From: Chlorokybus atmophyticus | Taxonomy: Eukaryota; Plantae; Mesostigma and Chlorokybus algae | Reading direction: 5' to 3' | NCBI GenBank assembly: GCA_009103225.1 | Contig: RHPI01003642.1 | Coordinates: 641,116 to 705,115 of the forward strand | DNA length: 64,000 bases | In this document: in pieces, positions 4,360 through 62,605 of the stretch | How positions within the stretch are numbered: position 1 is the first letter of the stretch | Layout of the letters: each line of letters starts with the position of its first letter | Program-made: the position numbers and the translations under genes | The notes under the pieces: model-generated | Seen by the model: the letters and a program-made list of their open reading frames with translations, nothing else | What the model was told of the DNA's origin: nothing | Databases searched by the model: none

Positions 4360-4628
4360 GCCAGTCGGTCAGGATACGGCGCCATTTGCACAGTTAAAAC
4401 CAGGCCGACAGCCAATCCATTTTGCATTAAGGATTGGACACCAAAACTGTATGAACATCAAATATACTGTACATACGACATCAATTGTTGCAACTGCTGA
4501 GTATGTGCCTCGCTGTCCAGTTAACACAGCGCGTGCCTGCTGTGTGCAAGCTCGACCTGTGCCCACGTGCCAAGGTAGTGTGCGCTCTGACCATAGCTGC
4601 CACGGTTAGCATCAGCCACTGCATGCCT

Positions 4629-6636
4629 CTAAGTTTCGTCCAGCTCTTTATCATCCCCGTCACTTTCATCATCAGGTTCGCCTTCATCACTACCGTCCTC
4701 TTCGTCTTCAGAGCCTTCAATTGCCTGCAGGTGCTTCTGTCTGTTACTACACTGCAGCAGCGAGTCTCTCTGAGCCGCAGATCGATCATGAAATCGCATA
4801 AGGCCAAACCTCAACACCGTCGGAGTCTTCATCTGTGTGGTCAGAGCCTTCAGGTTGTTCTTCACCATACTCAATGGCCTGCCAGACAAAGATTTAGTCG
4901 CCTGGCAGCCTACACAACTGACATCCGTCCAATACATGCAACCGCACCGCATTGTAGTACTTCAATGGATCCTGCCATAGGTCGTCCTTGATGATATCAG
5001 CAATCTGCATAGCCCACCGTAGCTTAAAGTCGGTTACGGCAATCAATTTAGCCATCTGACTTGGGGGGTGCTCACCTCGTCCTCGTCACCTTTCCTGAGT
5101 CCCCTTGTGAACCATGAGAAAAAGCTGCGGTACATGATAAGCTGAGGTTAGTACAGGCAAGCTAAGCTTAGTATAAGCGCCGAAACCGAAAATACCCATA
5201 CCTGAGTTGACTGTAAGCGCGCTTGTTGCCTTTGAAGTCATCAGGTGGCTTTGTGATGTCCTGCAGACAGGGCCCAACGTATTTGCTGAGCAATATGTCA
5301 TGGCAGCAGCCACCAAAACACCATAATGCAGTAGCAACCTTGCCAGGTCTCCACTGTGGTTTTGTGCCCACTGTCTCTGGCTCGCCACTGTCACTGTACC
5401 TAACTTCCTTGAAAAGCTCGCGGTCTTCAAAGTATGGATTGTCTTCTCTAAATTTCTGCCAACAGCAAGCCAGCTCGCTCACAATAATACCCAGTATGGC
5501 TCGAAGGGCACTCAGCGTACCATTGTTATCTTGTAGCCAGAGCTCATGTCAGGCGACTCGTCCACAATCAGCTCTTCTAAGTATGAGAGAATCTGCATGG
5601 ACGATGGGTTGTTGTATTTAACAATCGCAAATGAAAGCCCCACCTCAATAGTGGAAAGCCCATGTACCTGGTGGTCTTCATCAAGTAGAAGGTCGCCGAG
5701 AACAGGATGGCAGGCAAACTGCAGGAAACATGCTGCATTACAAGAGGCATATCATGCGCCGCACACTTCTCCCCGACACCATGCCAGTGCAAGGATGTAT
5801 ACCGCGGTCAGCCAGAACTCGGGAATATTCCTGATGATCTCATTGCGCTTTTGGTACAACGGCTTCTTCACCGCATTCCACTTCATCTCCACTGCCAGCA
5901 CCTCGTCGCTTGACTTGTCGTTGATCTGCCATTCAGCATGTATCATGACATACACTAGCTACCCCCATTGTGAAAAAAGGTGCTGATTCCCATGATCACA
6001 GAAGCTTCACACAAGCATGCCCCATGTCAGTGAACAACTGGCGCTTTGCAGTGCTGCAAAGTAGCTGTACACTGCTGCTTGTACCCGTGTGCATTGTCTT
6101 CAGCTAAAGACGATGAACACGGGTGCAGCTAGGTGCTGGCACGTTTCTACATTGCAAGCCATACTCAATAGTAGAGTGACCTGACAGACGGGCAGCTCAA
6201 TCGCGCAACGCTGGCTTGCCGACAGTCGAGCTAGGTACTGAGACGACACATGCCGTTCCGGCTGTGGATGCTGCCTTTCAGCTGAAGCAAGCAATCATGC
6301 AACACGCAGCATGCCCCACTTGCGTCAGCGTTATGCACTGAGGTCTCAACAACCCAGATGAAATGAGGTGCATTGTTATTGACAACGTTGAATAGCATTG
6401 TACGTCATGCATTCGGCTACTGTGCCAGTACAATAACTGAGCCAAAGCGGAGCATAACGCACCTGCTCCAATTCCTCTTGGGTCTCAGACAGCATGCCGA
6501 GATTAGCTTCATCAAGTGCAGCTTGCTTCTCCAGAACGTCCTGCTGCTGCTTGCCACTCTTAACAGCTGTTGCCGCACCTCCCCCCGCAGCTGCCGGTTC
6601 GCCCCCACCCTTCCTGGCCCTCTTAGCCTCTCCCAT
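4629..6636 (-). CDS. NRP1: NAP1-related protein (NRP/SET/TAF-I type histone chaperone), multi-exon
   Basis: Exons encode INDKSSDEVLAVEMKWNAVKKPLYQKRNEIIRNIPEFW, ILSYLEELIVDE..SGYKIT, NPYFED, SFFSWF, IADIIKDDLWQDPLKYY and an acidic tail ending at TAG 4629; typical SET/NRP motifs. Confidence 0.92.
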
Positions 6637-6891
6637 GACCTCCTTGATTGCAGCTCTTCCACAGCTAGAGGTGCACCCTCGTCACCTCACCTAGCCAACC
6701 ACCCATCTAGCACAAAAGCTGCTCAGCATCCAACCAACGCCGCCGCCAACGCCGCTCTGCTCAAACACAGCTCTGCTCACCATCAATGCCCCAGCAGGTT
6801 GAATAGGGTTTGTCTGTGCGTGAGCCAATAGCGGCTGTACAAAGCGGCGGAGGCGGCGGTGGTGGGTGGTAGGGGTGCTGGTGGTGGTGGC

Positions 6892-8448
6892 ATGCAGATC
6901 CAGTGGAAGAAAGGCGCAGTCAACGGGCAAACAGCCAAGCGTCAGCGCCTGCGCCCTTCTCCTTTGGCGGAACAGAGCGAGGAGGTGGACGCTGCCGCTG
7001 ACAGCACGCAGCTGGGTAGGCGTTGGCAGGCGTGTGTCCGCGGTTAGGCTCTCCGTTGTTATGCCTCTGTTCATGTGTCTTCATGTATTTCGTAGCTAAG
7101 TATTACGTGAGTATTACGGCGTGTGTGTGTGCCGTAGAGCAGCAGGACGCGCTGAACACACCCATGTACGTATGTATGTAGAGTGTTGTACTACTGCACT
7201 ACCTATCTACGTTGTTGCTAGCAAAGCCACAAAACCTGCTGTTGTGCTACTGTTCCGGTCATTGTAATACAGGTAATGCAGCGTACGCATCCCACTGAAC
7301 AGCTCAGCACTGGCTGCTTCAATAACCTCATCTGCAACTGTGTCCGTTGCATGTAGGTTAGGGGCTGTGCGCGTGTGCTCTGAGCTATGAAAGCCCTTGG
7401 CAGTGCTGACAGTGAGGCTGACTTGCGCATGGTGTGCGTGTCCTGGTTGCAGTGGCACGAGAGCACTCTGCTGCTGACGAGGTTGATTCTGCCTCTGCAT
7501 TGGAAGCGTCTCGGCGGCAGCAAGAAGCTGGCAACGCCCTCGCAGAGGTCAGTGGCTACTTGTTGGGGACTCAGAGCAACGTTTAGGTTGCTGATATGCC
7601 CTTGTCATAGCAGCGTGTGTATAGTGCGCGCACATGTCTCTGCAGTCATGCACAGCACTTACCCGGCTTGCTTGGCCAGGCTGGTAGATGGGAAGAATCG
7701 TTGCGCGCCTGGAACAAGGCGGTGGCATTAACACCAAACCGCGCAGCGTTGCACGAGGCACGCGCTCAAGTCCTGCTGGAGACTGGGGACACGTGGAGTG
7801 CGCTTCAGGCCGCAACACGTATGCTGTTTATGTTGTTGCGAGGGCGATGGCAAACCCCTCCTCCATCCCAGTACTTGAAATCGGTTGCGGCCACGGAGTG
7901 ACACAGTGTTTGTTGTGCCGCAGGTGCCACTGAGTTGGAACCAGAGTGGGCTGATGTAAGTGTGTACTCTAACAACATGCCTGCAATGTGTCACTGGACT
8001 CAGCACCTTTGTAACCGTATGCAAACCTCCCTCACTGCGTCCCCTGCAGGCACTGGTCACTTTAGGACGAACGCGGCTCCACCTTGGAGAGCCGGCCTTG
8101 GCACTGGAGAGCTTTGAGCAGGCGCTCAGGCTTGAGGTAAGGCTCGCGGCTGCCTGGCCAGTCCAGGATTAAGCCATGCACTAGTATTGATAGTGCGGCC
8201 ACTTATCTTTTGGGTGGTTTTCTGTACAGCCCACCAATGCGGCAGCCAGAGAGGAGCTTGACGACGTGCGGGTGCTGGTGTTAAAGCAGCGCGCAAAAGC
8301 GCAGGCCGCAGCTTCAGCCGCAGCTGAAGAACACGAAGGTGACTACACTATGGCATCTGCTGCAGGAAAGGTTGCTGCAGGTATAGTGTACGCTCAGCGC
8401 GTACCAGTAGTAGATCGCTCTCAGGCTGACAGCCACAGAGCACTGTAA
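6892..8448 (+). CDS. TTC33: Tetratricopeptide repeat protein 33 homolog, multi-exon
   Basis: Starts MQIQWKKG; TPR exons QQEAGNALAE / AGRWEESLRAWNKAVALTPNRAALHEARAQVLL..WSALQAAT / RATELEPEW / ALVTLGRTRLHLGEPALALESFEQALRLE match the TTC33 layout. Confidence 0.85.
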
Positions 8449-9035
8449 TCTATATTGTAACTTGTATAATATCAAACTGTACATATGCTCTACAATTGCA
8501 CGTGTCACCACTTGACATACAGAAACTCTTCATCCGCGATCTGGTGTGCATGGCTTGTACTTGGCATGTAATGAGTTTCTGTGTTCAATATTGTTGTTTC
8601 AATCCCGCACAAAGCCAATGTCGCAGGCATTGGGTTGAATGGTGGGGCCAGGAATATCAGTAGAAACAGCACATCACAGGCATATCTGCTGCCTGATCGC
8701 GGAACGGGTTCGCAGCAATTGACAGAACCGAGCATGCTTGAAACTGCCTGCATTTTGGTTCAACAATTGACTATCGTGCGCATGCAAAGACACACAGTTG
8801 TGACAGTTGCATGTAAAGGGAGTGAAATCCATGAAGTAGCTCTGCTTGCCACTGATGAAGTGCCACCGCCAACACATCGCGAGCTTTCATTTGGTAACCA
8901 AGTGCGTATGGATGAGGATTGTGCTCCTACAGTTGCCAGTGGCAACGTGGCACAAGGCTAACTTTTACACCAAATCAAACCAAACAGGATCTTTGCAACG
9001 CATTATTTCTGTACAAACGGCAGAGTGTGCTGCCA

Positions 9036-10201
9036 TTATGACGTCCTTGCCTTGCGGCTGTTGATCCATGCAACTATGCTATCCACATTGCGATCAAGGT
9101 CCTCGACAGTGTTACTAGGACAGGCCTGGATAATCTCCTCTTTGTAACTCTCACGAGCCTCCTCCAACAACACTTGCATAATTTCGCATTCAACATTCTC
9201 TTGCACCTTTGCGTCCGGGTATCCCCTGTGAAGGGTGCAGCTAAGCGACTAGATGGCGTGCATGAATCAAGCATGATGCCGCGCAACTTCTGTGTGCTGG
9301 CTACGAGGTTCCAAAAGCAGGATCAAAGTCTGTAGTAAACAAAGTGTGTCTCTCACCTTTTCTCCAACCTGTCGTACAGCACGGTGTTGTCTGTTTGCAA
9401 GACAACAACCAGATCAAACCACCGTTGCGGAAAGAAGTCGCAGCTGTGGTAATCAACCACATTCCCGCCCGCACTCATCTGATCTTCCATAGCATCACAG
9501 ATCTGCGCAACCGACGTTATCAGAAGCAGCAGCTTTGCTGCAGACAAACTGCAGCACTTGGCATGCGGAGTGAATGTTGCACAACTCAAGCACACAGCAA
9601 AAGCCGAGTGTGTCTCAAGACGGAGAGATTCGTGCTGCACACGCCTTGATACTGCTGCTATAGACACTTGGCCTGCAACTGCGGGATATCTTTGATGACA
9701 AGGACGTAGTAGGCAAATAAGCGCAGGTATTTACACTGGAGAATATCATTGAACTTGTCTGGAGACTGTAACGATGATGGATAAGGGCCATGCATGCAAC
9801 TTCAAAGTCTGTAGTGGTGCACTTCTTGCCCATGCAAACCGTTTGCCACAAGGGCCTGACCGGCAATGCGCATGCATAAGCAGTGTGTCTATGCGCTCAC
9901 CAACGTGAAACCTGCACGCAACACGAAGCACAAACGGTGGACATCACTACAGCAGTATCGAACTGTTTGGGCTTCTTGTGCCGTGCTCTACCTTGTCCTC
10001 GTCAATGATGTAAGCCTCGTGCTCCTCATCGTAACCGTCATGCAGGCTCTTCTCCTTGACAAGATCCCCAACGTTGACGTGCCTCAGGTCTGTAGCCGCC
10101 GCGACTCGTGCCGCCAGCGACGTCTTACCTGTGCCCGGTGTACCCGTCACCAGCACGTTGGGCGTACCCCGCCTACCATCTCCAACCACCTCTATTCCCA
10201 T
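9036..10201 (-). CDS. AK6: Adenylate kinase isoenzyme 6 (AK6/hCINAP/Fap7), 3 exons
   Basis: [14 protein letters not shown]-loop, [37 protein letters not shown], and [22 protein letters not shown]; stop TAA at 9036. Confidence 0.95.
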
Positions 10202-10318
10202 CGCGATAACCACGACACCACCGCCGCCGCCGCCGCCGCCCAGGCCAGGCCAGACCAGGCCAGCCCAACTTCTTGAACTTCTACTTGAAAACCAGATACT
10301 GACCTGTTCCGGGTTGGC

Positions 10319-10330
10319 GGATCCGGTTCA
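10319..10330 (-). promoter_or_regulatory. Candidate promoter motif TGAACCGGATCC in the AK6/EIPR1 divergent spacer
   Basis: The plus strand reads ggatccggttca. Confidence 0.45.
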
Positions 10331-10649
10331 GTAACGGCCTCGGCATTAGGCCAGGCCAAACCAGGCCAGGCCAGTAGTGGCCGGGCTGCTTGGGACAGGC
10401 AGGATAGCGGCGTCGTGAGAGACAGCGTTGGAAGCCTGATGTGGGAAACGCTATGGCTGAAGCACATGGATTGGCTGGATGCTGAGGAAGGTTGTATTTA
10501 CAAGCTGATCTGTTGAAGTGTTACGCGTGGCCTGTGCGCTCTAGGCGGCGAGGGCAGCAGCAGCTATGGGAAGGCCATCGAGGCTTTTACTGTGCGAGTG
10601 AAGGCGCTAGGCGCAGATCTGGTCTTCAGTCAGCGAGGCCGGCGCCAGC

Positions 10650-12557
10650 ATGTTTAGCCGCGAAGGCGGCAACATCTACGGTGTCAAGTACCAGGTGCAT
10701 TGCAGATTCCAATTTGTGCGTTTGCTTGGCATGCCCACTATGTTCACCACATCGTTCTGGTTGCTGCTCATTATCTCAAGTTTACTTCACTTACTGGACA
10801 GGCGAGGTGTCTTGCTGCTCAGCATGCAGAGAAGCGGCTCTGCCGGTTTCTGCTGGGCACACTGAGCTTGCGTGAAGAGAACGAGGTCAGTGAAGGGAAA
10901 GCACCTCTTGATTGGTTTGGCTTAAGTGACATGATGACTCCAGCAATGCCGCATACCAGTGTCCCATGCCAATGTGGACATTGCAAAATCAAACACGGAA
11001 GAAAAGATTATGGTTGCGCAGGTGCATTTGATTGAGGCACGGCAGGATCGCGGTGGCGGTGAGGTGGGTTGCGTGGGTGTGTACCGGCATCCGCGAGGGG
11101 AGGTGTGGCATCTCTCACCGTCCCCGCACGATGCAGACGCTTTGGCCACAGCATACAGCAACGGTCAGACGTGCTGCGTTGCATTCCATGCATGCTCTCA
11201 CTGTCCTTAGCATCGTTGTTGGCATGGTATTGTTGTGGTTCATTGTGGTTTCATGCACAGCTGGCGTGTATAGTGCAACAGTGTGGCGCTTGCCTTCAAG
11301 CACTTCCAGTGACCAGTTGCAGGAGTTGGCGTCGCTAACCGGCCATACTGGCCGCATCCGCACGTGCGTGCCTTTGTGCATGCCTGCCTATGTTTTGTGT
11401 GCATGTCCCGACTCAGCATAGCGAAGCAGCACAAGCTGATGTTGTCACACTGACATGATGCTTGCATCTTGCAGAGTGCTGTGGAACCTGCATGACCGCG
11501 CCAACTTGCTCAGCACCGACAACACTGGCATCAAGCTTTGGGCGTTGGACACTGCACGCAAGAGCGCAGCAGTAAGTACCCTGTTTACTCTCAGTTGATG
11601 AGCATGTCTCAATCTGGTCTCAACCTGATCTCATTGCAAGCCTGTCAGGTGACGTCCAGCTCGCCCGAACAGCAGAAGAGCGACCGTCCTATCTATGCCG
11701 CTGCATGGGACCCGTTTGGGCCGCAGGTGGCAGCTGCTCGCAATGGAAGCGTCACGGTGTGGGACTTGAAAACAATGACAAAGGCATCGTCTATTGACCA
11801 TGCACACTCGGGCATGTCTGTGAGGGATGTCAACTTCAACGCGAGAAGGCAACATCTTTTGGTGCGCGGTACCGGTGATATTTTGGCACTTATCTCACGG
11901 TTTGTTTCTTGTTTGCTTGGTTTGAATGCTTGGTGTTTGCATGTGCAGCTTACATCTGGCGATGACTGCAAAATCAAAGTTTGGGACCTTCGACATACCT
12001 CCGCACCACTCTCGGAGCTGCTTGCACATGCGCATTGGGTGTGCAGAGCGCTGTTCAATCCTGTCCATGACCAGCTGGTGTTGGTACGGGCCAGCCTTGG
12101 CATGCCTTATTGTTTCACAATCACCTGGGGTGTTAATGCTGCGCAGTGTGCACGTGCACTTGCAAGTGTCATCATCTTTGGTTGTGCAGAGCTCCAGCAC
12201 GGATAGCTCAGTGAAGCTTCACGTGGTATCGTCGATGATAGCAGCTTCATCGGCCGCACACGTGGCGAGTCCTGCTACATCCCCAATGTCATCACCTGTG
12301 TCAAGGTGAGTGCAAGTTTCCGGTTGTTTGCAGCATGTCGTGTTGGTGGTATTTATTAAGGGGCTCTGGAATGCAGCCCGCGTGCTGGACGCAAGCCACA
12401 GGATAGACTGGCGCACACATACGACGAGCATGAAGAGAGTGTTTATGGCCTGGCGTGGAGTTCGGCTGATCCATTCATGTTTGCCTCAATGTCGTATGAT
12501 GGCCGTGTTGTGGTCAGCACTGTACCCAACAACGAGAAACACAAGATTGTGTTGTGA
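10650..12557 (+). CDS. EIPR1: WD40 protein EIPR1/TSSC1 (EARP/GARP-interacting; plant DWA2-like), about 9 exons
   Basis: Exons IYGVKYQ|ARCLAA..RFLLGTLSLREENE|VHLIE, VRDVNFN, TSGDDCKIKVWDLR, AHAHWV..FNPVHDQLVL|SSSTDS and YDEHEESVYGLAWSSADPFMFASMSYDGRVVV..KHKIVL*. Confidence 0.92.
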
Positions 12558-47132: not shown

Positions 47133-48937
47133 CTTGGCAGCCCACCCACCTGCACCAACTCCCAGCCTACCCGCCGGACGCTGACGCCGTCTTGACAGCA
47201 ACCCGAGTGCGCAGCTGGTTGCTCACCTCGCAAACCCACTCGCCTCTCAGCGGTGCAAAGCGCTGACCCCTTGTACAACAAGCCTCTTGATGCCGCCGCC
47301 TCGACCCTAACCTCCAACGTTGCCGACGACTCCGCCGCCGCCGCCCGTACTTTGGGCTAGGGTTTGCGCAAACTGTGGTGCTTTGCGCCAACTCCCGCGT
47401 TTTTCAAAGCTCAAAGCCTTCAAGGCTGTCGGCAGCCAAACCGGACCAGGTCAATGGACTGTGATGGTGAGAGCATCGGCTTCTTAGCTGACATCCGTCT
47501 TGCAGCTTGCAAGGGTCGTTAGCACCACCGCTGTCCATTAGACTCAGTTTCCTGAAGCTAGCGTTACCTTACAATCGTTACGACTGTGGTGTACTCCATG
47601 TCACATCATGTGACTCACACACGTGAATGGCATTCACAATGAGTGGCCACTCACAAAGATAATTTACGATAACTTACTTTGAGTGCCAATTTATTGGTTG
47701 AAGCGACGTATACATGTCACTTAAGCATCGTTCCCACCATGAGAAAATTGAAGCAAAAGTTGCACAACTCCTGTTTTGTTGCACTGCATGATGTGGGTTA
47801 CAATTGGAATTGCTACACACACACAAGTGCAAAATGTGAGATTATGTCAGCATAAAAAGCATTGAAGTCTGTATTCAAGGGTAAGACCATTTATATATAA
47901 GTTGACTATCATATATACTGCGTGAAGATTGCTCGATAAGTTTACATAGCGAAAAGGTAAAGACATGTTGCTGCTATCTATTAATATACTGTGTTTACAT
48001 GCGTGTGTTGTACAACTTATAAAGACACACGTGCGTTTTTATATGATGGTATGCTCACACGATATAATTGCATGCGATGTTATGGTTGAATGTTAATATG
48101 CGCGTTTACGCTTCATATTAACAACTTGCAATGCAAGCTATGTATGTCGCATTTTTCTCATCTCATTTCATTTTATCATATCGTATGTTATGAATATCAT
48201 CATATAGGTATATGCACATATGCATGGTTATATATAAGCAATGACTTTTTCGAGTACATATTGTAAACGTAGAATTTGGTTGGGGCTACAACATTAATAC
48301 AGGTTTTATGGAATACGCACATGTTTCGGCCTTCTCATTTATGTTTGCTTGACAATCACGCCACTGTGTTTCAGACATCGCGTAATTGCATGATAAAATG
48401 CATGGATTATCTCACTAATCTATACTTATACATGAAAGTAACGCATATCATGTAATTCTTACATGGCAACACGGAGGGCCGCGGAATGTCAACATACATA
48501 AACGCCTTGCGCATGTCGTGTACAGCACCAATTTGTCTTCTTGCATTGCACTATTAATGCTACATACACATTAAAGACAACAATAATTATGTAAACAAGC
48601 TTAGCTTGAGCTGAATCGGGGTTGGCCTAGACATATCAAGTTCTCAACTATGCGTGCAAAGGCAGGATAGAAGGGCAGGGCACGCAGGTGGAGCCTTGGA
48701 CAAGCAGCAGGCAGCGTTCAGCTAGCCGTACATGCTGCGTACAAGAGCATGTTTGCTTTACTTACAATTGCAACAACTACGAGCGTTGTCAAGCAAGTGT
48801 TCACCGTCAGTGCAATCATGCATAGCTGCCACCATGCCCGACTGAGCCTAACACAACCTAGACGCACAACCAGTCATGCTATGCGAGCGCCGCATTTGCC
48901 TCAAGCTGCTGGGCCGTGAGCCACATGTCCCCACCGC

Positions 48938-49464
48938 TGTAACCGGAGCAATAATAATAGGGGTAATATTGCTACATAAATAACACATTCTGTATGAATA
49001 AGTATTTAAACATGCTTATTTATACCTCCTTTTTTACGGTTCCTCGCTTATAAAAGGCTATGATGCTTTATCGTAGCTGAAATAAGTCCCACTGGGTGTA
49101 GAATCGCTTATTCAAGCCTATATAGTGTCACATTTGATAAAATGTGATCACTATCTCGTTCGGTACCTTACGATAGGTATCTTCCAGTAGGTACATTATC
49201 GATAGGTACCTTATCTGAGCTTTGATTGGCTCACGCTAGATTTCCTAACTACCCTATCCGTAGGGTTGATGTCTGGTTGTTAGTTAATTATCTGAACGTA
49301 TATATTTGATATACTCTAAATATCAAAGGTCACATTAAACTGATGTGGGGACTTTCAGTTCTCTGCTCAGTGGCGGCCGCGCCGTTGAAAGGCTTGTCAT
49401 AGGCGGTGTGGGTGTTGGGGTAGAGGATTGAAGGGGCATCACCGGCGACGGTGGTGCTGTTACA
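48938..49464 (+). repeat. 5' LTR of element A
   Basis: Direct repeat of 61446-61972 with TG..CA termini, followed by a PBS-like sequence. Confidence 0.96.
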
Positions 49465-50729: not shown

Positions 50730-51068
50730 TGTAACGGAGTGCTACCTCTATAGAGGTTCCCCGCCCTTATTTAAGATTAGATAAGGGTCCCAACGGGTAT
50801 ATACAGCCAATTAAGCCGTATTAGGGCCGTTAACCTAGTGTTAAGGCCCTAATGTAGTGTTACTTAACTGTAACACTGATATCGACAATCGACATGAGTC
50901 TCATGTCGATATCAGCTGTATGGCGGCACTGCTAACGCAGCAGCCGCCATAGCCAGGGGATCTTCTGCTTCGGCAGTTGCCCCTGGCGGCGGCGGTGTGG
51001 TTGGCGTGGCTGGTGGTGGTGTTGGGGTAGGGGATTAAAGGGAGGAGGTAGCACCCCCTCTCCTTACA
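50730..51068 (+). repeat. 5' LTR of element B
   Basis: Direct repeat of 56451-56789. Confidence 0.98.
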
Positions 51069-51081
51069 TTGGTATCGGAGC
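51069..51081 (+). other. Primer binding site of element B (initiator tRNA-Met)
   Basis: TTGGTATCGGAGC immediately after the LTR; differs from canonical TGGTATCAGAGC by one base, which would form a G:U pair with the tRNA. Confidence 0.88.
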
Positions 51082-51844
51082 ACGGGCGGCAAGGGGCCTG
51101 TGGGAGGGGCGGCGGCAGGCGGCAGCGACGTTAAACTAGTGGTAGTTAAAGTGTTTTATGTTTTAACTATAATAGTTAAACGCTGCTGCTGGTGCCTAGC
51201 CTAGCCTAGCTTGCCATGCCATGCATGCCATGCCTAGCCTAGCATGCTTGTCCTAGTCTAGTTTGTTATTGTGTGAAGGGAGCCGGCCATTCAGGCCTAT
51301 CCCTGAAGCATTGCATTGCAGCACAACACATAGTAAACATACATTGATTGTGTTATATTGTGTGTGTACCACCACGTGGATTCGTGGTGGTGTAAGGGTT
51401 TTTCTATTAATTTGGAAATTCCCTTGGGGGGGGGGCAGTTCGGTGGCAACATCGACTGTCTCAGTGCCGCCATTTTGAGCGGTGAGGCCGCCAGGATTTT
51501 CTGAGCGGCCGATATCAAACTCACCATTCACAACTGGTCGATATCGGCATGTAAGGTCGATTTGACGAGATTTTGGCACCTTGTGTGTCAATCACAGTTG
51601 TGAATTGTGCTGGGTTGTACAAAGTGAAAACTTTGAGAAATCATAACTCGTGAAACGTCGCGTGGATTCGCGCACGGTTTGTTGCAGAGTGAGTGTCTAG
51701 TTGAGGTGTGTGGAGAGCTCTTTTTGGGGTGTATACTCCATCGTAACGCCTTAAAACTTGACGAGACAAAATCAGTAGATTTTACCTGTATTGCAGTGCA
51801 CAATCTGAGTACTTGTGCACTTGCTAACGGCTGTCTTTGGGCAG

Positions 51845-54800
51845 ATGTCTGACCAAGAAGAGGGAGGTGAGAAGTACTTTACCGTCCCTGACTCGTCGTC
51901 ATCATACGAACCATCAAGTGATGACAAAGTGAGAGACTCGGACACGAGTGAGAGCTACAAGCTCACTGAGAGTGACAAGGAGGAAGCTGCGCAGGATAGC
52001 GAAGCTTCTCCCAATCAATCTACTCAGAGTGGGCCAGCTACAATAGACACACAGTCTGTCATTGGTGGGGCTATTGAGAAGTATGCGCAAGAGCGCAAAG
52101 CCTTGATCGATGCTCACCCACAGCTTCGTCAGGAAGTGTGGGATGCATGGGCGCAGACGGTTCGTGATGGCTATGAGACAGACTTTGCCACACTCCCTCG
52201 TGCAAGCAAGGAGATGGTGATCCGCATGCTCGAGCATGAGCTGACGAACAACATCCCGCCACTCGTGCGAGGTGATCCAAAGGTGGCTGCTATCATGACC
52301 GTATATGATAAGCCTCTCCCTTACCAAGGCAAGCGAATGGCGTTTGAGGCTTTGGCCAACTTGGGAGTGGAAACCTCACAGCGTTGCAAGGACGTGTTCT
52401 GGTGGCGGGTGCTACTTCAGCAGCTGGTGCATCAGCGGGGCTGCCGGTTACAGCACTGAACAAGCCTGAGAAGTTCAAGCCCAACGGCAGTGTCAGCATC
52501 CATGATTGGGTGGTCACTGTTGAGCACTATTTGACAGCACTGAAGCGCCCAGTTGGTGAGCACATTGCTGTTGCTGAGTTGCTCATGCCATCTGACGCTC
52601 TCGCCGAGTGGGCGAGGCAGACAGAGGATGGTGCGGCTAAGACAGTGGAGGCACTATTCAAGTTCCTTGTGGAGCGCTATGGTGGCATGGATCAACATCG
52701 AAAAGTGGAAGAGTATGCTTGTGTGCTTGTACATGTGGAGTTCAACATGCTTACCGATGTGTTGCATGCATTGACTGAGTTGCAAAATAAGCACAGAACC
52801 TTGAGTATGGTGGTAATGGTGCCAAAGTATCATGGCCCATGGTTCAAACATACTCGCGGAGGGTCTGTGTTGAAGCAATTCAGCAAGCGTGAAACAGGGA
52901 CAGTACGGTTGTCAGCCATATTGATCAACCCTCGCATTGGTCACGGACTCTTGGCTACATTTCAAGGACGGGTGGTACCTCTGTTGTGGACATTTAGTGG
53001 CACAATGCAAGGTGTAAACAGTTCGTTCTTGATTGACACTGGTGCAACACACAACTTCATTGAGGAACAATGGGTTGTGCGCAACAAGATAGCGTGTAAA
53101 CCCTCAGCATTTTCAGCTGCCGGTGCGGGGGGGTGCGTTGCCAGTGAAAGGGGATATAAAAATGAAAGTAAAGATTGGTAATTATCATGCCACTCTTACT
53201 TTCATAGTGGTATCCATCAACATATCAGGTGTTGATGTGGTATTAGGACAGGAATGGCAGGAAAATGTCAAAATGACATTGGATACTGGCGCACGCTTGT
53301 GCACAGTACAGAAAGGTCGTAAGCGTGTAACATTGTCTGTGAAAGGGTCACATAGCTTGGACCACAAGCAGACCGACCCTGCGCTACTCACTGCACTGCA
53401 AGTGAAACGTGCGTTGCGCAAAAATACACCGGCGTTTCTGGTACACTTGACGTCGTCGGACGACTTTGTGCCGGGAAATATAGAAGGTGTTGCAGACATC
53501 ATTGAGGAATATCAAGATGTGTTCTCAGATGAGTTGTCAGGCTTACCTCCTGATCGAGGTGTCGGACACACATATCACTCATTCCTGATAGTGAGCCTCC
53601 GTTTCGGCCTATATATAGGCTGAGCCCCCGAGAGGGGGGGGAAAGGGAAACTCAAATCAAAGAGTTATTGGAAAAGGGATTGATTGAACCGAGTTCTTCA
53701 CCCTTTGGCGCGCCCATCTTGTTTGTGATGAAAAAGAATGGAAAGCTGCGCATGTGTGTGGATTATCGTGCTTTGAACAAGATCACGGCAAAGAATCGAT
53801 ACCCGCTGCCCCGGATTGATGATGTGTTTGATAAACTGTCGGGAAATGCGTACTTTAGTACGTTGGACTTAACAAGTGGGTATCATCAAATCCGGATTCA
53901 TCCTTCTGATGTTTACAAGACAGCATTCAGAACACCTTCGGGCCATTATCAATACAAAGTGTTACCTTTTGGATTGACTAATGCGCCCGCAGTGTTTCAG
54001 AAGGAAATGAATAAGATTTTTGGTGGCATACTTGGCAAGTATGTTATGGTTTACTTGGATGACATTATTGTCTTTAGTAAAACCAAGGAAGAGCATAAGC
54101 AGCACTTGAAAGCGGTGTTCGCCTTGCTGCGTACACATCGCTTGTTTGCCAATCTTGCGAAGTGTGACTTCTGCAAGACGGAGTTGCCATTCTTGGGGCA
54201 CATTGTGAGCGGTGCGGGTGTGAAACCTGACCCTCGCAAAGTGCAAGTTGTAAAGGATTGGCCTCAACCTAAGAATATCCATCAGCTGCGATCATTCTTG
54301 GGATTGGCAAACTACTTTCGCAAGTTTATGATGGGGTACTCCACAGTAGTGGTGCCTTTGACAAAACTGTTGCGAAAAGATGCTCCATTCTTATGGACAG
54401 CTGAACAAGAAGCTGCTATGCAACAGGTGAAGCTAACTTTGACTTCTGCTCCAGTGTTGGCATTGCCAAACTGGGACAAGCATTTCACTGTGGTTAGCGA
54501 TGCGTCCACCCTTGGGTGTGGTGCAGTACTGTTGCAAGATGGCAGACCATGTGCTTATGAGAGAAGGAAGTTCATCCCAGCAGAGGTGAATTACAATACC
54601 ACCGAGCAAGAGTTGCTTTGTATAGTACATGCTCTGGAAACATGGCGATGTTACTGGGAGGGGGTTCAGTTCACAGTGGTGACTGATCATAATCCATTGG
54701 TGTATGTCTCAACACAGCAAAACTTGTCACGAAGGCAAGCCCGCTGGAATGAGTTTCTGTCTCGGTTTACCTTTGAGTGGGTATACCGGCCAGGCAGAAC

Positions 54801-56328
54801 CAATGTTGCTGATCCTCTGAGTCGTTGTCCATCATTGTTGGCAGCTATGCGTGCGCAATTGCTTGCGACGCGCGGTACATTGCCACCAAATGATGAGTTT
54901 GTGCAAGTTGTTGTGCAAGGGTATGCTTTTGACCCATGGTTCTCGTCAGAGGACAACGTGCAAAAGCTGAGCAAACGAGACAACTTATAATATGTGGGCA
55001 CCAGCTTGGTAATACCTGACCATGCTGGATTGCGTGCGAAATGCATAGCTGATGTACACGATCCACCGTACGCTGGGCACTTTGGCAGTCGCAAGATTGT
55101 TAAAGCAGTGCAACAGTTGTATTGGTGGCCATCGTTGCCTGTTGACGTAAAACGGTATGTGGACACGTGTGACAAATGTCAGCATGATAAGCCGTTACGT
55201 CAGAAACCCGCTGGTTTGCTGCGACCATTGCCTATTCCTGATGGCAAATGGGAAAGTGTGAGTATGGACTTAATTACTGAGCTCCCAGAGACAGCATTAG
55301 GTCACACTGCGGTTGCAGTTTTTGTGGATCGTTTAACAAAAATGGTCCACATTGTCCCTTGTCGCACGGAGATAGGCTCCCGTGAGTTGGCGATGGTTTT
55401 TGTCGCGTCTGTGTTCAAGTTGCATGGCTTGCCCCGCAACTTTGTGTCAGATCGCGATCCGCGATTTGTGGCTCAGTTTTGGAAGTCGCTATGCAGCTTC
55501 TTACACATTCAGCAGAACATGAGCACTGCTTACCATCCACAGACGGATGGTCAGACAGAACGCGCCAATCAAGTGATTGAGGAAACCATCCGGCATTATG
55601 TGAGCCCGAATCAGAATGATTGGGATATTTATCTCCCAATGGCTGAGTTTGCGATCAATAATGCATGGCAAGAGAGTGTGCAGGAGACTCCGTTCTTCTT
55701 GAATTACGGAGTGCATCCACTGAGTCCTGCGAACATTAAGTTGCCCGCTACTGACGTGACTCGCGTACCTGCAGCGCGCGAGATGGCTTCGGCCATGCAG
55801 GATAGGTTAGCGTTGGCAAAAGACTGTCTGCGCGCAGCGCAAGACAGACAAAAAGCCCAAGCTGATGCGCATCGTAGAGAGGCCAACTACGATGTGGGCT
55901 GTTCGGTGCTTTTATGTACCAAAAACGTATCCATCAAGGGAGTGGGTACCCGCAAGTTTTTCCCTTGCTGGATAGGCCCTTTCAACATAACTGATCGGGT
56001 CGGCACTCACGCGTATCGGCTGGACTTGCCAAAGTCGATACGCATTCACAATGTGTTTCACGTGAGTGTACTGAAACCATACCGTTCTGACGGTCGGGTT
56101 CAACCTCCTCCACCCCCCGTTGCAGTGGATGGCGACGATACCTTCGAGTATGAGGTGGAAGCAATCCTGAGTCACCGTAAGCCTCGACGCGGACGCGCGC
56201 CGTCTTACTTGGTGAAATGGAAAGGGTATGGTGTTGAGCACAATACGTGGGAGCCCGAAAGGAATCTTACCAACTGCCAAGAGATTCTTCGGGGGTACTG
56301 GAATGCTGTGTCCACACGAGGACGGTAA
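51845..56328 (+). pseudogene. gag-pol of element B: frameshifts near 52.4, 53.15 and 53.6 kb, premature TAA at 54988, internal gag deletion
   Basis: ORF-track pieces 51815-52459, 52384-53181 (FLIDTGA), 53123-53623, 53668-54990 (RT/RNase H, YLDD) and 54994-56328 (integrase + chromodomain EYEVEAILSHR..YLVKWKGYGVEHNTWEP). Confidence 0.95.
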
Positions 56329-56450
56329 AAGGGTGCTGGCAGACATCTTTACCGCTTCGGCCCTGGTTCTCTCACTGCTTTGGTTTTCGGTGATCATGTA
56401 GGGCTTTGCTAACCCTTCATTGAGGACATTGAAACCTAAGTGGGGGGGAA

Positions 56451-56789
56451 TGTAACGGAGTGCTACCTCTATAGAGGTTCCCCGCCCTTATTTAGGATTA
56501 AATAAGGGTCCCAACGGGTATATACAGCCAATTAAGCCGTATTAGGGCCGTTAACCTAGTGTTAAGGCCCTGATGTAGTGTTACTTAACTGTAACACTGA
56601 TATCGACATGCGACATGAGTCTCATGTCGATATCAGCTGTATGGCGGCACTGCTAACGCAGCAGCCGCCATAGCCAGGGGATCTTCTGCTTCGGCAGTTG
56701 CCCCTGGCGGCGGCGGTGTGGTCGGCGTGGCTGGTGGTGGTGTTGGGGTAGGGGATTAAAGGGAGGAGGTAGCACCCCCTCTCCTTACA
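56451..56789 (+). repeat. 3' LTR of element B
   Basis: Preceded by the PPT and followed by the TSD AACGC. Confidence 0.98.
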
Positions 56790-59700
56790 AACGCTCTGAC
56801 AGTGGTCCACCTGTTTAGGCGCTTGCTCGACCTGCCGAGTTTGTTCCCAACAAACAAGCGGCAATTTTCGACTGGCTCGTGAAGCTGAGACACTATGTTC
56901 ACTCCCTTCACATTTCTGAGGAGGGAAGTTGCGTTCGCTGAGTTGCTGATCCCAAACGATGCTCTGGCAGAGTGGTACCGCCGTAAGCAACGGGACACGA
57001 ACCTCGGGCGGGAACTAAACAGTTGTGCTCTTTCATCGAGCAGCGCTATGGTGGCGCAGATCCTGCCCAGGTTGCTCGCAACCAGCTGCACAATCTGCGT
57101 CAGAACGGGCGTCCGGTTCAGCAGTATATCTAGAATTTTTAGTCGTTTGTCAGCAAGATCAATGCTGGCAACTACCCATCAGTGATGCTGATCAGCTAGA
57201 TATGTTCAGGCGTGGCTTGAACACAGATCTCGTGCAGCATGTAGCCGTCAACCCCACGAGTTTGCAAGAGTGGGCCTTGACGGATCCATCAATGCTGATG
57301 CAGATGGTTGTTGCTGTGGACAGTGTGAAGCGCTCTCACGCAAACATGCAAACCACAGCAAAAGAGGCAGCCCCGGTTTTAGCTGCAAAGCGCCCGGCCA
57401 CTGACAACAAACCTTTTGTGAAAATGGCGAAAACATCTCAGCCTGTTGGCCCCTACAACGCGGCCAAATCCACCATCACTTGCAACTTCTGCAAGAAGAC
57501 AGGTCATGGGGAGGCCAAGTGCTATGCAAAGCAGAATGCATAGAAGGCCAAGCAGCAAAAGGACAAGAAATAGGAATTGTCCGTGGTTGGTAGCTTAGTC
57601 GAGCAGAACGACTTAAAAAACTCCATACTTCGTGGTAAAGTTTCCTCTCTTTGTGATGTATTAGATGTATGGACTGATATGAGCACACCACCTGTGTTGA
57701 CACATGCAAACGGTTGTGTTTTAATCAATGTTCCATTCTCTGAATTGGTAACTGCTGTTAAGCACTTACACGAGTTGCAATTACAACATGCTGTCACTGC
57801 ATGTGTAGTTATCCCTCAATATCATGGCCCGTGGTCGCAATTGTTGAAAGGGGGAGAAGTAATTATGCAACTCTCACGCAAAGATATAGGCACTTCACCG
57901 TTACAAGTGATTTTTATCAAGCCTGCTACCAATCACGGCACTCCGACATTAGCTACATTTGATGGTCACTCAATGCCACTCCAATGGAGATTTGAGAGTT
58001 AACTTATGGGTACACCAAGTACAGCATTGATTGATACTGGTGCAAACCATAACTTTGTTGAACATGCTTGTGTGAAACGTAATAACATACCTTTCACACC
58101 AGTCACGTCGTATGTACGTGCTGCTGGTTCCACCCTTAATGCAATTGGGGAGGTAAAGGGGCGTCTTTTTATTAACAACCACAAGACTCGACCAACGTTC
58201 ATCGTGGTGGATATAGGTATCCCCGGGGTGGATGTTGTTTTCGGTGAACAGTGGCACACCGAAGCAGGTTTGCAATTAAACTCTCGAACAAATACGTGCA
58301 CCTTTCGTCAGGGTAAACGTCAGGTGACGTTAATTGCACCTGCACTCGCACGTGTTGCTCGTGACAATGTTCCGTTCCTCTCTGCTATGCAACTGAAACG
58401 TTGCATGCGTAAACGTGAGGAAGTATATTTGATGCACTTACGACAGGTAGGGACACCTATAAAACAGACCGTATCTGACCCTGTGGTGCAATCACTTACG
58501 GAACAATACGCAGATGTATTTCAGGATGAACTCCTGGAGTTGCCTCCTGATCGAAACATACATCATACCATTCCGTTGGAAGAGGGGGCAAGCCACCTTG
58601 GCGGCCTATCTATAGGCTAAGTCCCTTTGAACATGCGGAAATGGAAAAATAGCTCAAAGAGTTATTGGACAAAGGTTTAATAACAAAGAGCATATCTCCT
58701 TTTGGTGCACCAATTTTGTTTGTGCTCAAAAAGAATGGCAAGCTACGCATGTGTATTGATTACCGTGCTTTGAACAAGGTAACTGTGAAAAACAGATACC
58801 CTTTGCCTCGGATTGATGATTTGTTTATAAGCCGGTCAGGTGCAACAGTGTTCAGCACACTTGATTTGACCAGTGGTTATCATCAAATCAAAATCCACCC
58901 GTCGCATATACAAAAAACTGCATTTCGCACCCCATTGGGACACTTTGAGTATAAAGTGTTACCATTTGGGTTAACAAATGCACCGGCTACATTTTAGACA
59001 GCAATGAACGCGGTATTTGGTGATGAATTGTACAAGTTTGTACTGGTATATCTTGACGACATTATTGTGTTCAGCAAAACCCGGGAGGACCACCACAAGC
59101 ATGTGGAATTGGTTCTAGCTAAGTTACGCGAACACAAATTCTATGCCAACCTGTCCAAATGCAACTTTGCAAAGGATGAACTACCATTTTTAGGGCATGT
59201 GATTGGCAAAGAAGGATTGAAACCAGATCCTCAAAAGGTGTGTGCGGTGAAGGATTGGCCACCACCCAAGGATGTACATCAGTTACGTGCTTTCTTGGGG
59301 TTAGCCAATTATTTCGCAAGTTCATGCGAGCATATTCTAGCATGGAAAATCCTTTAACATCTTTACTGAGAAAAGATGTTAAATTTGTGTGGACGGAGGC
59401 ACACGAGGTTGCTTTTACACCCATTAAAGATGCATTAACACAAGCCCCTATGTTAGCCTTCCCCGACCACACCAAGCCTTTTGTGGTGATCAGTGATGCT
59501 TCCACCATTGGGTGTGGGGCAGTCCTTCTACAGGATGACAGACCATGTGCATATGAAAGCAGAAAGTTCATTCCTACTGAACGTAACTACACAACCACTG
59601 AGCAGGAATTGCTTCGGGTGGTGCACGCGCTGCGCACATGGCGTTGCTATTTGAAAGGTGTGCAATTTTCAGTGATTACTGATCACAACCCGCTCACATT

Positions 59701-61445
59701 CTTTCATACGCAACAGAACCTGTCGAGGCGGCAAGCTAGGTGGAATGAATTCATTTCTCGTTTCACTTTCATTTGGCAATACCGTCCAGGTCGCACCAAT
59801 GTGGCGGATCCACTAAGTCGTAGCCTCGCTCTTTTGGCACTTACGCGCTTTCGAAGTCTGCGTAATGTGCAACAGCCTGAAGATCCTTTTTTAAAGGAAG
59901 TGTCCACAGGTTATAACTCAGATGGTTGGTTTAGCAGTCAAACCAACTTGCAACAGCTTACTGCTGTTAGCAATCTGTGGTATAAAGGGGAGCAATTGGC
60001 AATTCCCAACTCGGGCGACTTGCGTAAGCAATGCTTACATTCAGTGCATGACCCGCCGTATGCTGGGCATTTGGGGAAACACAAAACACTCAAAGCTGCG
60101 CAACAGTTATACTGGTGGCCGTTAATGTCAGCTGAAGTGGATCAATATGTTCGCACATGTGACGTGTGTCAACGTAATAAGCCACTACGACAATAACAAG
60201 CGGGATTGCTTAAACCATTGGTAATTCGAAAATAAAAGTGGGATAGTGTCAGTATGGATTTGATTACTGACCTACCTAAAACAGCAGCCAAATACACTGC
60301 TATTGTGGTTTTTGTCGACCGTTTGACAAAAATGGTGCATTTTGCCCTGTGTTGCACAATCGTGAGTGCACGGGACTTGGCACATTTATTTGTGTCCACG
60401 GTCTTTCGAGTTCACGGTATACCGCGTGAGCTTATCACAGATTGTGATCTTCGGTTTGTCTCCAAGTTTTGGAGAGAAGTCTGTGAATTGTTGGGGGTAA
60501 AACAAAGCATGTCGACTGCTTTCCACCCGCAAACGGACGGACAAACTGAGCTAGCAAATCAAATACTGGAAGGAATGCTTCGCCACTATGTGGCTCCTAT
60601 CCATGCTGATTGGGACAGGTACTTGCCAATGGCAGAGTTCGCTGCGAACAACGCGTGGCAGGAAAGTGTAAAGGAAACCCCATTTTTCATGAATTATGGG
60701 ATTCGCCCGAACACACCAGCGTCATTGCGTGTACCTCGCAATGCCCTGACGGTACCAGCGGCAAAGGAATTTGCCACTGATATGCAAGAAAATATGACTC
60801 GAGCCAAGCTATGTCTGTCAGAAGCACAGGACAGGCAAAAAGCTTATGCTGATACACATCGAAGAATGGCCACTTTCGATGTCGGCGATAAAGTTTTGCT
60901 TAATGCAAAGAACATAACCATCAAAGGTGCGGGTGCTCGCAAGTTGCTGCCCCGATGGTTAGGTCCCTTCTCTATCACTGATAGAGTTGGTACGCACGCT
61001 TATCAGCAATTGCCCCCAAGTGTGCGTATACACAACGTGTTCCATGTGAACTTGTTGAAACCTTACCGCTCAGACGGTAGAACACAGCCTCCACTACCGC
61101 CAGTTGAGGTGGACAGCGAGCTCGAATACGAGGTGGAAGTGATATTGAACCATAAGCTAAATAGTCGAGGACGCGCAACTCGCTATTTGGTGAAATGGAA
61201 AGGGTATGGCTCAGAACATAACAGTTGAGAGCCCGACAGGCATTTGACGCACTGCCGCAAGGTGCTTCGAGCTTAATGGGATTCAAGTCGTGTCCCATAA
61301 ACTGTGGGCTTGGTTTTATGACAGACTGGCAGTGCAGTTTCATTACCACCCTGTCATTTCCTGCTATCTCACTGGTCACAACTACTCAAAATCAAGCATG
61401 ATTAACTGAGTTCAACAAGACGTTGAAAACCTAAGTGGGGGGGAA

Positions 61446-61972
61446 TGTAACGGGAGCAATAATAATAGGGGTAATATTGCTACCTAAATAACACATTCTG
61501 TATGAATAAGTATCTAAATATGCTTGTTTATACCTCTTTTTTTACGGTTCCTCGCTTATTAAAGGCTATGATGCTTTATCATAGCTTAAATAAGTCCCAA
61601 TGGGTGTGAAACCGCTTATTCAAGCCTATTTGATGTCACATTTGATAAAATGTGATCACTATCTCGTTAGGTACCTTACGATATGTATGTTCCAATAGGT
61701 ACCTTATCGATAGGTACCTTATGTGAGCTGTGATTGGCTCACGCTTGATTTCCTAACTACCCTATCCGTAGGGTTGAAGTCTAGTTGTTGTTTAATTATC
61801 GAGAGGTATATATTTGATATACTCTTGATATAAAAGGTCACATCAAACTGATGTGGGGACTTTCAGTTCTCTGCTCTGTGGCGGCCACGCCGTTGAAAGG
61901 CTTGTCATAGGCGGTGTGGGTGTTGGGGTAGAGGATTGAAGAGGCATCACCGGCGACGGTGGTGCTGTTACA
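61446..61972 (+). repeat. 3' LTR of element A
   Basis: Preceded by AAACCTAAGTGGGGGGGAA and followed by ACCGT. Confidence 0.96.
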
Positions 61973-62605
61973 ACCGTGGCCACCGCCGCCGCTTTAAGAT
62001 CGCCTGTGCTTCTTGACTCACGAACTTTACAAGGACCCTGACAACTTCAGTGTCATATTGTGTCACGCGGTACCAAATACAACTTATTACAATCTTAAAC
62101 CCTTACCGCCTCTCCTCGGCGCAGCGCTTTTGCTACGATGACCATCATGGTTGTGATATTGGTATTTGAGCTTGCAACACAGGTTCGAATCTCGATGCGG
62201 ATGGGTGAGAAGGGCGACTGTGTTCCATGCATAGCTGCCACCATGCCCGATTGAGCCTAACACAACCTAGACGCACAACCAGTCCTGCCATGCGAGCGCC
62301 GCGTTTTCCTCAAGCTGGCGGGCCTTGAGCCACATGTCCCCACCCATTACCGCGGCCGCCGCTTTAAGATCGCCTTTGCCTGTGTTTCTTGACTCACAAA
62401 CTTTACACGGACCCTGACAACTTTAGTGTCATATGGTGTCACGCGGTACTAAACACACATAATTACAGTCTGAAACCCTTGACGCCTCTCCTCAGCGCAG
62501 CGCTTTTGCTACGATGACCATCATGGTGGTGACATTGGTATTTGAGCCTGCGACACAGGTTCGAATCTCGCTGCGGATGGGTGAGAAGGGCGACTGTGTT
62601 TCATG
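61973..62605. repeat. ~376-bp two-copy tandem duplication; the first copy is split by element A (its left part is at about 48818-48937)
   Basis: catgcatagctgccaccatgcccga..ccacatgtccccacc occurs at 48818 and again at about 62226; gccgccgctttaagatcgcc..caggttcgaatctcg..gggcgactgtgtt occurs twice, with GGTTCGAATC at 62182 and 62558. Confidence 0.92.

Follow-up and report, generated by a model that had tools for sequence, protein, structure and literature searches.

Introduction

LTR retrotransposons with an adenine methyltransferase domain of their own (DAM-LTR elements) were first described in a preprint of May 2026, which screened for them by hmmsearch at an E-value of 1e-5, distinguished five lineages and called them absent from Streptophyta. 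In that study the Asn-Pro-Pro triplet was conserved in almost all DAM-LTR members, intact eukaryotic DAM domains yielded no 6mA in E. coli, and the absence from the plant lineage was used to argue that the domain exploits host 6mA chromatin. By the preprint's description, the methyltransferase domain of DIRS elements belongs to the same eukaryotic DAM lineage and was the source of the capture by LTR elements.

Here we analysed a 64,000-nucleotide stretch of the genome of Chlorokybus atmophyticus (the window), in which an extra segment lies between the Gag nucleocapsid end and the protease of a retrotransposon, element A. We conclude that this segment very probably represents a decayed Dam-type N6-adenine DNA methyltransferase domain (PF05869 lineage), carried at this position by a green-lineage clade of Ty3/Gypsy chromoviruses. 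Like the DAM-LTR chromoviruses of the preprint, element A is a Ty3/Gypsy chromovirus with an apparently Dam-derived domain inside its polyprotein and a green-lineage host, and its domain is of the short eukaryotic form; the statement in the first-pass annotation that chlorophyte LTR elements contain similar domains agrees with the preprint. Unlike the described elements, element A has lost the Asn-Pro-Pro triplet (NVPF), as have a second element nested within it, element B (HVEF), and 11 of the 12 related domains that we aligned. The host also lies outside the range given in the preprint, since it is a streptophyte alga, and the domain is present in a Closterium assembly too. Unlike DIRS elements, which use a tyrosine recombinase, element A has a DDE integrase and a chromodomain, and no tyrosine recombinase was seen.

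Results

The two elements and their domains occupy the following positions in the window.

48938–49464, forward strand: 5′ LTR of element A (527-bp direct repeat of 61446–61972, 92.8% identity)
50730–56789, forward strand: element B, a second chromovirus nested within element A (LTRs at 50730–51068 and 56451–56789)
52717–52947, forward strand: core of the probable Dam-like domain of element B (N-terminal third gone; motif IV reads HVEF, 52732–52743)
57025–57540, forward strand: C-terminal part of element A Gag (open reading frame and translation; weak zinc-finger profile match)
57541–57576, forward strand: basic linker of element A (in-frame stops at 57541 and 57571)
57577–57924, forward strand: degenerate, very probably PF05869-derived Dam-like domain of element A (profile, BLASTP and hhalign matches)
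57925–58617, forward strand: retropepsin of element A (RVP_2, gag-asp_proteas and Asp_protease_2 matches; stop at 58000)
58665–61225, forward strand: reverse transcriptase (RT), RNase H, integrase, SH3 and chromodomain of element A (broken by stops and frameshifts)
61446–61972, forward strand: 3′ LTR of element A (partner of 48938–49464)

Element A thus has the set of an LTR retrotransposon (LTRs, Gag, protease, RT, RNase H, integrase and chromodomain), all of it broken. Pfam matches between 58665 and 61225 (RVT_1, RT_RNaseH, Integrase_H2C2, rve, SH3_Tf2-1 and Chromo) fall in four separate ORF pieces in two frames. The frame shared by the Gag end, the domain and the protease contains three stops, at 57541 (TAG), 57571 (TAG) and 58000 (TAA), and frameshifts lie in gag and between the protease and RT. 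With its in-frame stops, frameshifts, nested insertion and LTRs that are only 93% alike, this copy of element A is dead. In contigs of two other sequencing runs the first linker stop (57541) is a sense codon, so this stop is particular to the copy in the window; of the runs listed as containing the element A stretch none is recorded as RNA, and a single one guessed to be RNA is unconfirmed. The LTR pair of element B shares 98.2% identity across 339 bp, its ORFs at 53668–56328 encode RT-RH and integrase-chromodomain, and its gag remnant stops at ERYGG (52672–52686), after which the Dam-like domain follows almost directly.

Translation of 57577–57960 exactly reproduced the peptides quoted in the first-pass annotation, and the zinc knuckle CNFCKKTGHGEAKC (57481–57522), the segment and the protease motif LIDTGA (58027–58044) share one frame. 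An extra in-frame segment is therefore present between zinc knuckle and protease, as had been claimed, although it spans about 115 codons (57577–57924) and not about 130. By residue 2 of the next piece the RVP_2 profile has reached position 30, which makes the final ~25 codons of the flagged stretch protease lead-in and leaves ~57577–57924 as the domain proper. Within it we located an N-terminal helix (57595–57639), LDVW (57661–57672), NVPF (57727–57738), the strand-5 block VIPQYHGPW (57808–57834) and a last strand, LQVIFIKP (57901–57924). A tblastn search of the window with the element A piece found the element B copy at 52717–53001 (43% identity over 95 residues, E 5e-21). The segment had been expected to be kept in another family member if it was real, and its survival in diverged form in element B indicates that it is more than chance.

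The relationship to PF05869 that had been proposed for this segment holds, and it is shown solely through related elements. The closest RT relative found, on contig L012, has an intact Dam domain at the equivalent position with NPPF kept; it matches Pfam PF05869 at E 7.4e-7 (29.4 bits against a gathering cut-off of 28.1) and phage Dam profiles with 93.5% probability (E 2.4e-7). The element A domain aligns with the L012 domain by BLASTP (E 5e-5), with NVPF placed on NPPF, and in hhalign comparisons with L012 the profile of elements A and B reached E 1e-4 and that of seven degenerate members 98.8% (E 6.8e-17). In the other direction, a profile built from six outside relatives had the element A ORF as its sole match among the 974 six-frame pieces of the window (E 3.5e-8), and the element B ORF ranked second in the search with this profile. 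When the eight-member family (A, B and L012 included) was compared with 12 phage Dam proteins, hhalign gave 94.4% and E 9e-8 over 125 columns. The degenerate family without L012 gave E 1.4e-3 against phage Dam, and the A+B profile alone gave E 0.12 in the same register; three independent profiles agreed on the Dam columns and on the register. L012, L002, L016, L013 and L014 also have the Gag-DAM-PR order, and the position between knuckle and protease is common to element A, L012, L002, L016 and L014.

Direct searches with the window's own sequence returned little. The proposed HMMER/Pfam check on the segment failed, as 57577–57999 had no PF05869 match even at E ≤ 1, and nothing meaningful was found when the window's own piece was searched against PHROGs and the sequences of the PDB, in which no PF05869 structure was found. 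BLASTP of the element A domain against phage T1 Dam gave no match, hhalign of A+B against a narrow T1-like Dam alignment gave a 17-column patch only, and a T1-type Dam profile run against all six-frame pieces found no intact Dam gene in the window. An exhaustive HMMER search of 1.84 billion protein representatives with the A+B profile gave no match at E ≤ 0.001, which we do not regard as evidence of absence, since relatives such as P0200 exist and a two-sequence profile is too weak. A search seeded with the P0200 domain added one further protein only, P0241, and scans of metagenome contigs and viral contigs confirmed no relative. Pfam found no Dam match in the degenerate relatives P0200, P0241 and L002-2 either; because Pfam gives no match for the copies in the window, the hmmsearch screen of the preprint could not have seen those.

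We compared the element A domain with phage Dam (PF05869, for example phage T1 Dam), with which it agrees in how the core elements are ordered and spaced. Both have a strand ending in motif IV, a helix of ~17 residues, a hydrophobic strand ending in P, an aromatic residue 6–7 positions past that P and then two more strands; 29 residues separate N from P in A, against 28 in T1 Dam. Two of the three motif assignments made in the first-pass annotation are upheld by these alignments. NVPF is an altered NPPF, lying on NPPF in the direct alignment with L012 and on NPPY in the phage Dam profile alignments, and the CVVIP..W block lies on LLP..WF in the phage Dam profile alignment, with CVVIP on CIMVP of L012. 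The third, which equates LDVW with motif I (F-x-L-D-x-A-A, where the Asp is invariant), was not confirmed: in the MAFFT alignment A has a gap opposite FTFDACC of L012, confidence in the profile alignments begins only at residue 47, and a match would need a shifted alignment and a shorter spacer. Contigs of other runs read the L of LDVW as S, and in element B the motif I region is wholly absent.

Unlike phage Dam, which is a free enzyme, the element A domain is embedded in a retroelement polyprotein, has no Pfam match and keeps two of eight invariant residues, both in motif IV (N and the second P). Motif IV (N-P-P-[YF]), whose N, P and P are invariant across the phage alignment, is lost in both A and B, and the N-terminal half, where the SAM-binding motif lies, is reduced in length in A and has been deleted from B. 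L012 is the only one of the 12 aligned related domains (11 in one alignment, P0241 in another) to retain NPPF. Better conserved than the former catalytic motif is the strand-5 block, TSAC.L.P.

The AlphaFold check for a class I (Rossmann-like) methyltransferase fold, suggested for the domain itself, gave an unreliable model (pLDDT 47, from a two-sequence alignment), with which a BFVD search found nothing. For the relative L002-2 five sequences sufficed for a model with pLDDT 75 and pTM 0.73, which matched a PF05869-bearing ESM-Atlas cluster (TM 0.68) and two PCIF1 clusters (TM 0.67 and 0.66). Compared with 48,161 chains, this model retrieved mainly N6-adenine methyltransferases at the top, E. 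coli Dam (Z 6.0) among them. PCIF1 (PDB 6IRV) was the best PDB match (VIA Z 8.6 over 131 residues; Foldseek probability 0.97), and KsgA, Erm and EcoDam scored Z 6–7. Z-scores from 6 to 8.6 fall in the range that the search tool labels common. Unlike PCIF1/CAPAM, the cap-specific mRNA m6Am methyltransferase, the L002-2 model has no WW or helical domain, and the identity is 12–15%, so that the likeness is one of fold and not of membership. PCIF1 also uses NPPF. An ESM feature search with element A's own piece ranked a Dam cluster second and a PCIF1 cluster eighth, and the same search with the element B piece gave no usable match.

Discussion

To judge from its motifs, the domain most likely no longer methylates anything. 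In working members of the family we lean, by a little, towards a domain that persists as a folded module of Gag-Pol with no catalytic role, perhaps one that binds nucleic acid or helps to order polyprotein processing. We read it as a retained module because a young and intact element still has the scaffold, whose rate of evolution is about as low as that of the protease. The element in question, L002-2, has the motif NAGS, yet its LTRs are identical over the 300 nt reported and its Gag and 1375-residue Pol are intact. Between A and B, pN in the domain core is 0.46 and pS 0.73, which is similar to the protease. The pseudo-enzyme that the first-pass annotation had suggested is a plausible description and agrees with the pattern across relatives. 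It is also in keeping with a host lineage that is said to lack abundant 6mA, where a methyltransferase that imitates host 6mA marking would have lost its purpose.

The most probable of the alternatives, which we nevertheless consider unlikely, is that the domain is a purely neutral relic, which lost its activity, has no role, is eroding in every lineage and persists because a clean deletion from a polyprotein is rare. Motif IV is different in almost all lineages (NVPF, HVEF, NMPE, NTES, NAGS, NLQN, NVQM, VAPH and CDHH), element B is without the N-terminal third of the domain, and relatives have ~20 residues between strands 6 and 7 for which element A has no counterpart. In addition, of the recent differences in the domain between this copy and the contigs of other runs, 10 are non-synonymous and 5 synonymous, which shows no recent constraint, although the copy is in decay in any case. 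Simple erosion is harder to reconcile with a frame and length that are kept across lineages with saturated synonymous sites, with the protease-like divergence of A and B, or with the presence of the domain in an element with identical LTRs and intact ORFs. It would also sit poorly with a domain that AlphaFold folds from so few sequences and whose strand-5 block is conserved above the former catalytic motif.

It is highly improbable that the A lineage retains an active adenine methyltransferase in this domain, working with a variant NVPF motif on cDNA or RNA-DNA hybrids. The active KsgA/Erm N6-adenine RNA methyltransferases use N-[LI]-P-Y, so catalysis by NVPF is not impossible; element A keeps the N, P and F of NPPFS together with the following S, and none of the 40 best-supported differences in the other runs falls in the NVPF codons. 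Against this, no position in A can be assigned to the invariant D of motif I, the phage GRxxF block has its R and F in a stretch missing from A, the spacer between motifs I and IV is ~10–15 residues shorter, and the sister element B reads HVEF. The preprint reports that not even eukaryotic DAM domains that are intact produced 6mA in E. coli. A segment unrelated to Dam, such as a spacer specific to the lineage or an N-terminal protease extension with no more than a resemblance to Dam motifs, deserves almost no credence: no curated profile matches the window's own sequence and A+B against phage Dam is not significant alone, but every link of the chain through L012 is significant, the three profiles agree in columns and register, and the fold search with the relative's model returns adenine methyltransferases.

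A broader reading, which we consider rather less likely than not, is that an entire green-lineage chromovirus clade, streptophyte-alga members included, keeps a Dam-derived pseudo-enzyme whose catalytic motif has decayed nearly everywhere and whose folded scaffold is still selected in active elements. If this is true, the domain would have a second, non-catalytic job, for example as a binder of cDNA or of RNA-DNA hybrids, as a reader of 6mA or in the timing of Gag-Pol processing, and the catalytic job would be useless where the host gave up 6mA marking. The pattern would then be natural evidence for the link between DAM-LTR elements and host AMT1/6mA that was proposed in the preprint.

Taken by itself, this locus makes a modest finding, since its copy is a dead, nested relic. 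Retrotransposons with an adenine methyltransferase of their own have been known only since 2026 and were reported missing from the plant lineage. The domain form found here has lost its catalytic motif and is invisible to the standard profile, and screens that depend on profile thresholds will undercount such domains. With a streptophyte alga and a Closterium assembly, the status of the plant lineage shifts from "absent" to "present but disarmed", and these natural active-site knock-outs offer a chance to examine the role of the domain in the element.

Dam-like segment of element A in the window, and its relatives

Element A, a decayed Ty3/Gypsy element with a chromodomain, carries an extra segment between Gag and protease, and its gag region contains a nested, younger relative, element B.

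Features of elements A and B and their flanks
48817-48935 and 62226-62344: direct repeat, 119 nt, 93% identical, both copies flanking element A
48938-49464 and 61446-61972: LTRs of element A, 92.8% identical
50730-56789: element B
50730-51068 and 56451-56789: LTRs of element B, 98.2% identical
51860-52480, + strand, second frame: long acidic ORF (D, E, S rich), upstream of the B gag remnant
52672-52686: end of the B gag remnant (...ERYGG)
52717-53001: the same extra segment, kept in element B
57481-57522: Gag zinc knuckle of element A
57541, 57571 and 58000: three in-frame stops of element A
58027-58044: LIDTGA of the element A protease

The first-pass annotation read 57577-57960 as a degenerate Dam-like adenine-methyltransferase domain with the motifs LDVW, NVPF and CVVIP. 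Its quoted peptides were reproduced exactly on translation, and the stretch lies in frame with both the zinc knuckle and the protease, as it had said. The last ~25 codons are protease lead-in, so the extra domain spans ~57577-57924. The in-frame stops were absent from that annotation; frameshifts are also present within gag and between protease and RT, and nothing in this copy of element A is functional. The two copies of the 119-nt repeat, one just outside the 5′ LTR and the other ~250 nt past the 3′ LTR, may belong to an older repeat into which A inserted.

The segment in element B shares 43% identity with that of A (tblastn E 5e-21). Although its LTRs are 98% identical, B carries an internal deletion that removed the zinc knuckle together with the C-terminus of the capsid and the initial third of the Dam-like domain, so that the gag remnant passes, within ~10 codons, into mid-domain sequence. 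The acidic ORF, whose frame differs from that of the remaining B gag, may encode the N-terminal end of Gag ahead of a frameshift.

Homology to Dam methyltransferases

The searches suggested by the first-pass annotation came up empty with the window's own sequence: the window piece had no match in Pfam, and AlphaFold, given the two-sequence alignment, produced no reliable model (pLDDT 47). PHROGs and a PDB sequence search also gave no match, the A+B profile, run exhaustively with HMMER, returned none at E<=0.001, though two related proteins (P0200 and P0241) exist in a related collection, and scans of viral and metagenome contigs found no relative. The sole early hint was an ESM feature search that ranked a PF05869 Dam cluster 2nd and a PCIF1 cluster 8th. 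For these short, fast-evolving domains, direct search with a two-sequence profile failed, and success came via the conserved RT: we searched with the RT-RNase H ORF of element B and then read the neighbouring ORFs on the contigs of the best matches.

The best RT match, contig L012 (63% identity), encodes upstream of RT a Dam domain above the Pfam cut-off (E 7.4e-7; 29.4 bits vs 28.1), with intact motifs FTFDACC and NPPF and the protease fused directly after it (1156-2466). Adjacent ORFs on this contig share a few bases (2463-2466 and 4253-4262), which could reflect frameshift sites or assembly errors. BLASTP of the A and L012 domains (E 5e-5) placed NVPF on NPPF and CVVIP on CIMVP, bearing out the reading of NVPF as an altered NPPF; LDVW as motif I finds no support in the confidently aligned portion of any comparison. 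With hhalign, A+B matched L012 at E 1e-4 and seven degenerate members did so at 98.8% (E 6.8e-17). Against 12 diverse phage Dam proteins, L012 alone scored 93.5% (E 2.4e-7) and the eight-member family 94.4% (E 9e-8, 125 columns); the register was unchanged for the degenerate members alone (E 1.4e-3) and for A+B alone (E 0.12). A profile of six outside members, run against the window's 974 six-frame pieces, matched only 57574-57999 (E 3.5e-8); the element B ORF came next (E 0.49).

The domain recurs at the corresponding position, with motif IV replaced, in both L002 elements, L016, the second L013 element, L014/L015, L017, L018 and L019. On the ENA metagenome contig L002, two chromoviruses lie in tandem (4638-11338). 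The second, L002-2, has LTRs that do not differ over the 300 nt reported, an intact Gag and a Pol of 1375 residues with the Dam-like domain at its start; an apparently young, complete element thus carries the disarmed domain. L014 and L015 are near-duplicate contigs from the assembly of the streptophyte alga Closterium sp. NIES-54, with a 1251-residue ORF (3942-7694) that the family profile hits at residues 61-164 (E 1.2e-6).

Motif IV in family members
L012: NPPF
Element A: NVPF
Element B: HVEF
L019: NMPE
L016: NTES
L002-2: NAGS
P0200: NLQN
P0241: NVQM
L013: VAPH
Closterium (L014): CDHH, fully replaced
L017 and L018: lost too

Conservation across these domains is highest in the strand-5 motif TSAC.L.P, rather than at the catalytic site.

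An AlphaFold model of the L002-2 domain, built with five family sequences, reached pLDDT 75 and pTM 0.73. Its nearest ESM-Atlas neighbours were a 928-residue PF05869 cluster (TM 0.68) and PCIF1 clusters (0.67, 0.66). PCIF1 also came first in the PDB (Foldseek probability 0.97; VIA Z 8.6 over 131 residues), followed by KsgA, Dim1, Erm and TFB1M (Z 6-7). A Foldseek-independent search of 48,161 chains gave the same picture, with E. coli Dam at Z 6.0, and BFVD returned phage 'DNA N-6-adenine-methyltransferase' models (TM 0.51-0.55). These scores for a predicted structure are middling, and their weight lies in their agreement with one another and with the chain of sequence matches.

Decay and constraint

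Contigs of three other sequencing runs, none on record as RNA, cover the window stretch at ~90-96% identity. The first in-frame stop is a sense codon in two of them, and three single-base length differences coincide with the frameshifts of A, which indicates that these breaks are particular to the window copy. The NVPF codons are untouched among the 40 best-supported differences; inside the domain, 10 of these are non-synonymous and 5 synonymous, as expected for a decaying copy. The third run contains a more distant, high-depth 3.6-kb contig that matches window 57137-58690 only in conserved patches. Its unmatched stretch over the domain measures 250 letters, one codon short of the 253 in the window, and the other such stretches measure 624 vs 623 and 317 vs 304. 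The contig comes from a third organism and is related to, but diverged from, element A; an RNA origin of that run is a guess.

Between A and B, synonymous sites are saturated (pS 0.65-0.89), and the domain core (pN 0.46 vs pS 0.73) is about equal to the protease, so the segment was under constraint within the polyprotein during the divergence of the two lineages. For the family as a whole, we lean slightly towards a retained non-catalytic module and consider a neutral relic rather unlikely.

Discussion

We are highly confident that this domain derives from Dam and belongs to a DAM-chromovirus lineage, and its catalysis, judged from sequence, has very probably been lost. The KsgA/Erm family uses the motif N-[LI]-P-Y, and residual activity with NVPF is conceivable but improbable.

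DAM-LTR elements, including a DAM-chromovirus-like clade in Chlorophyta, were described in a May 2026 preprint, which screened with hmmsearch at E 1e-5 and reported a conserved Asn-Pro-Pro triplet and the absence of such elements from Streptophyta (10.64898/2026.05.21.726589). The kind of element is therefore already known; what is new is a disarmed, profile-invisible form in a lineage scored as being without such elements, and the Closterium contigs provide independent support for its occurrence in streptophytes.
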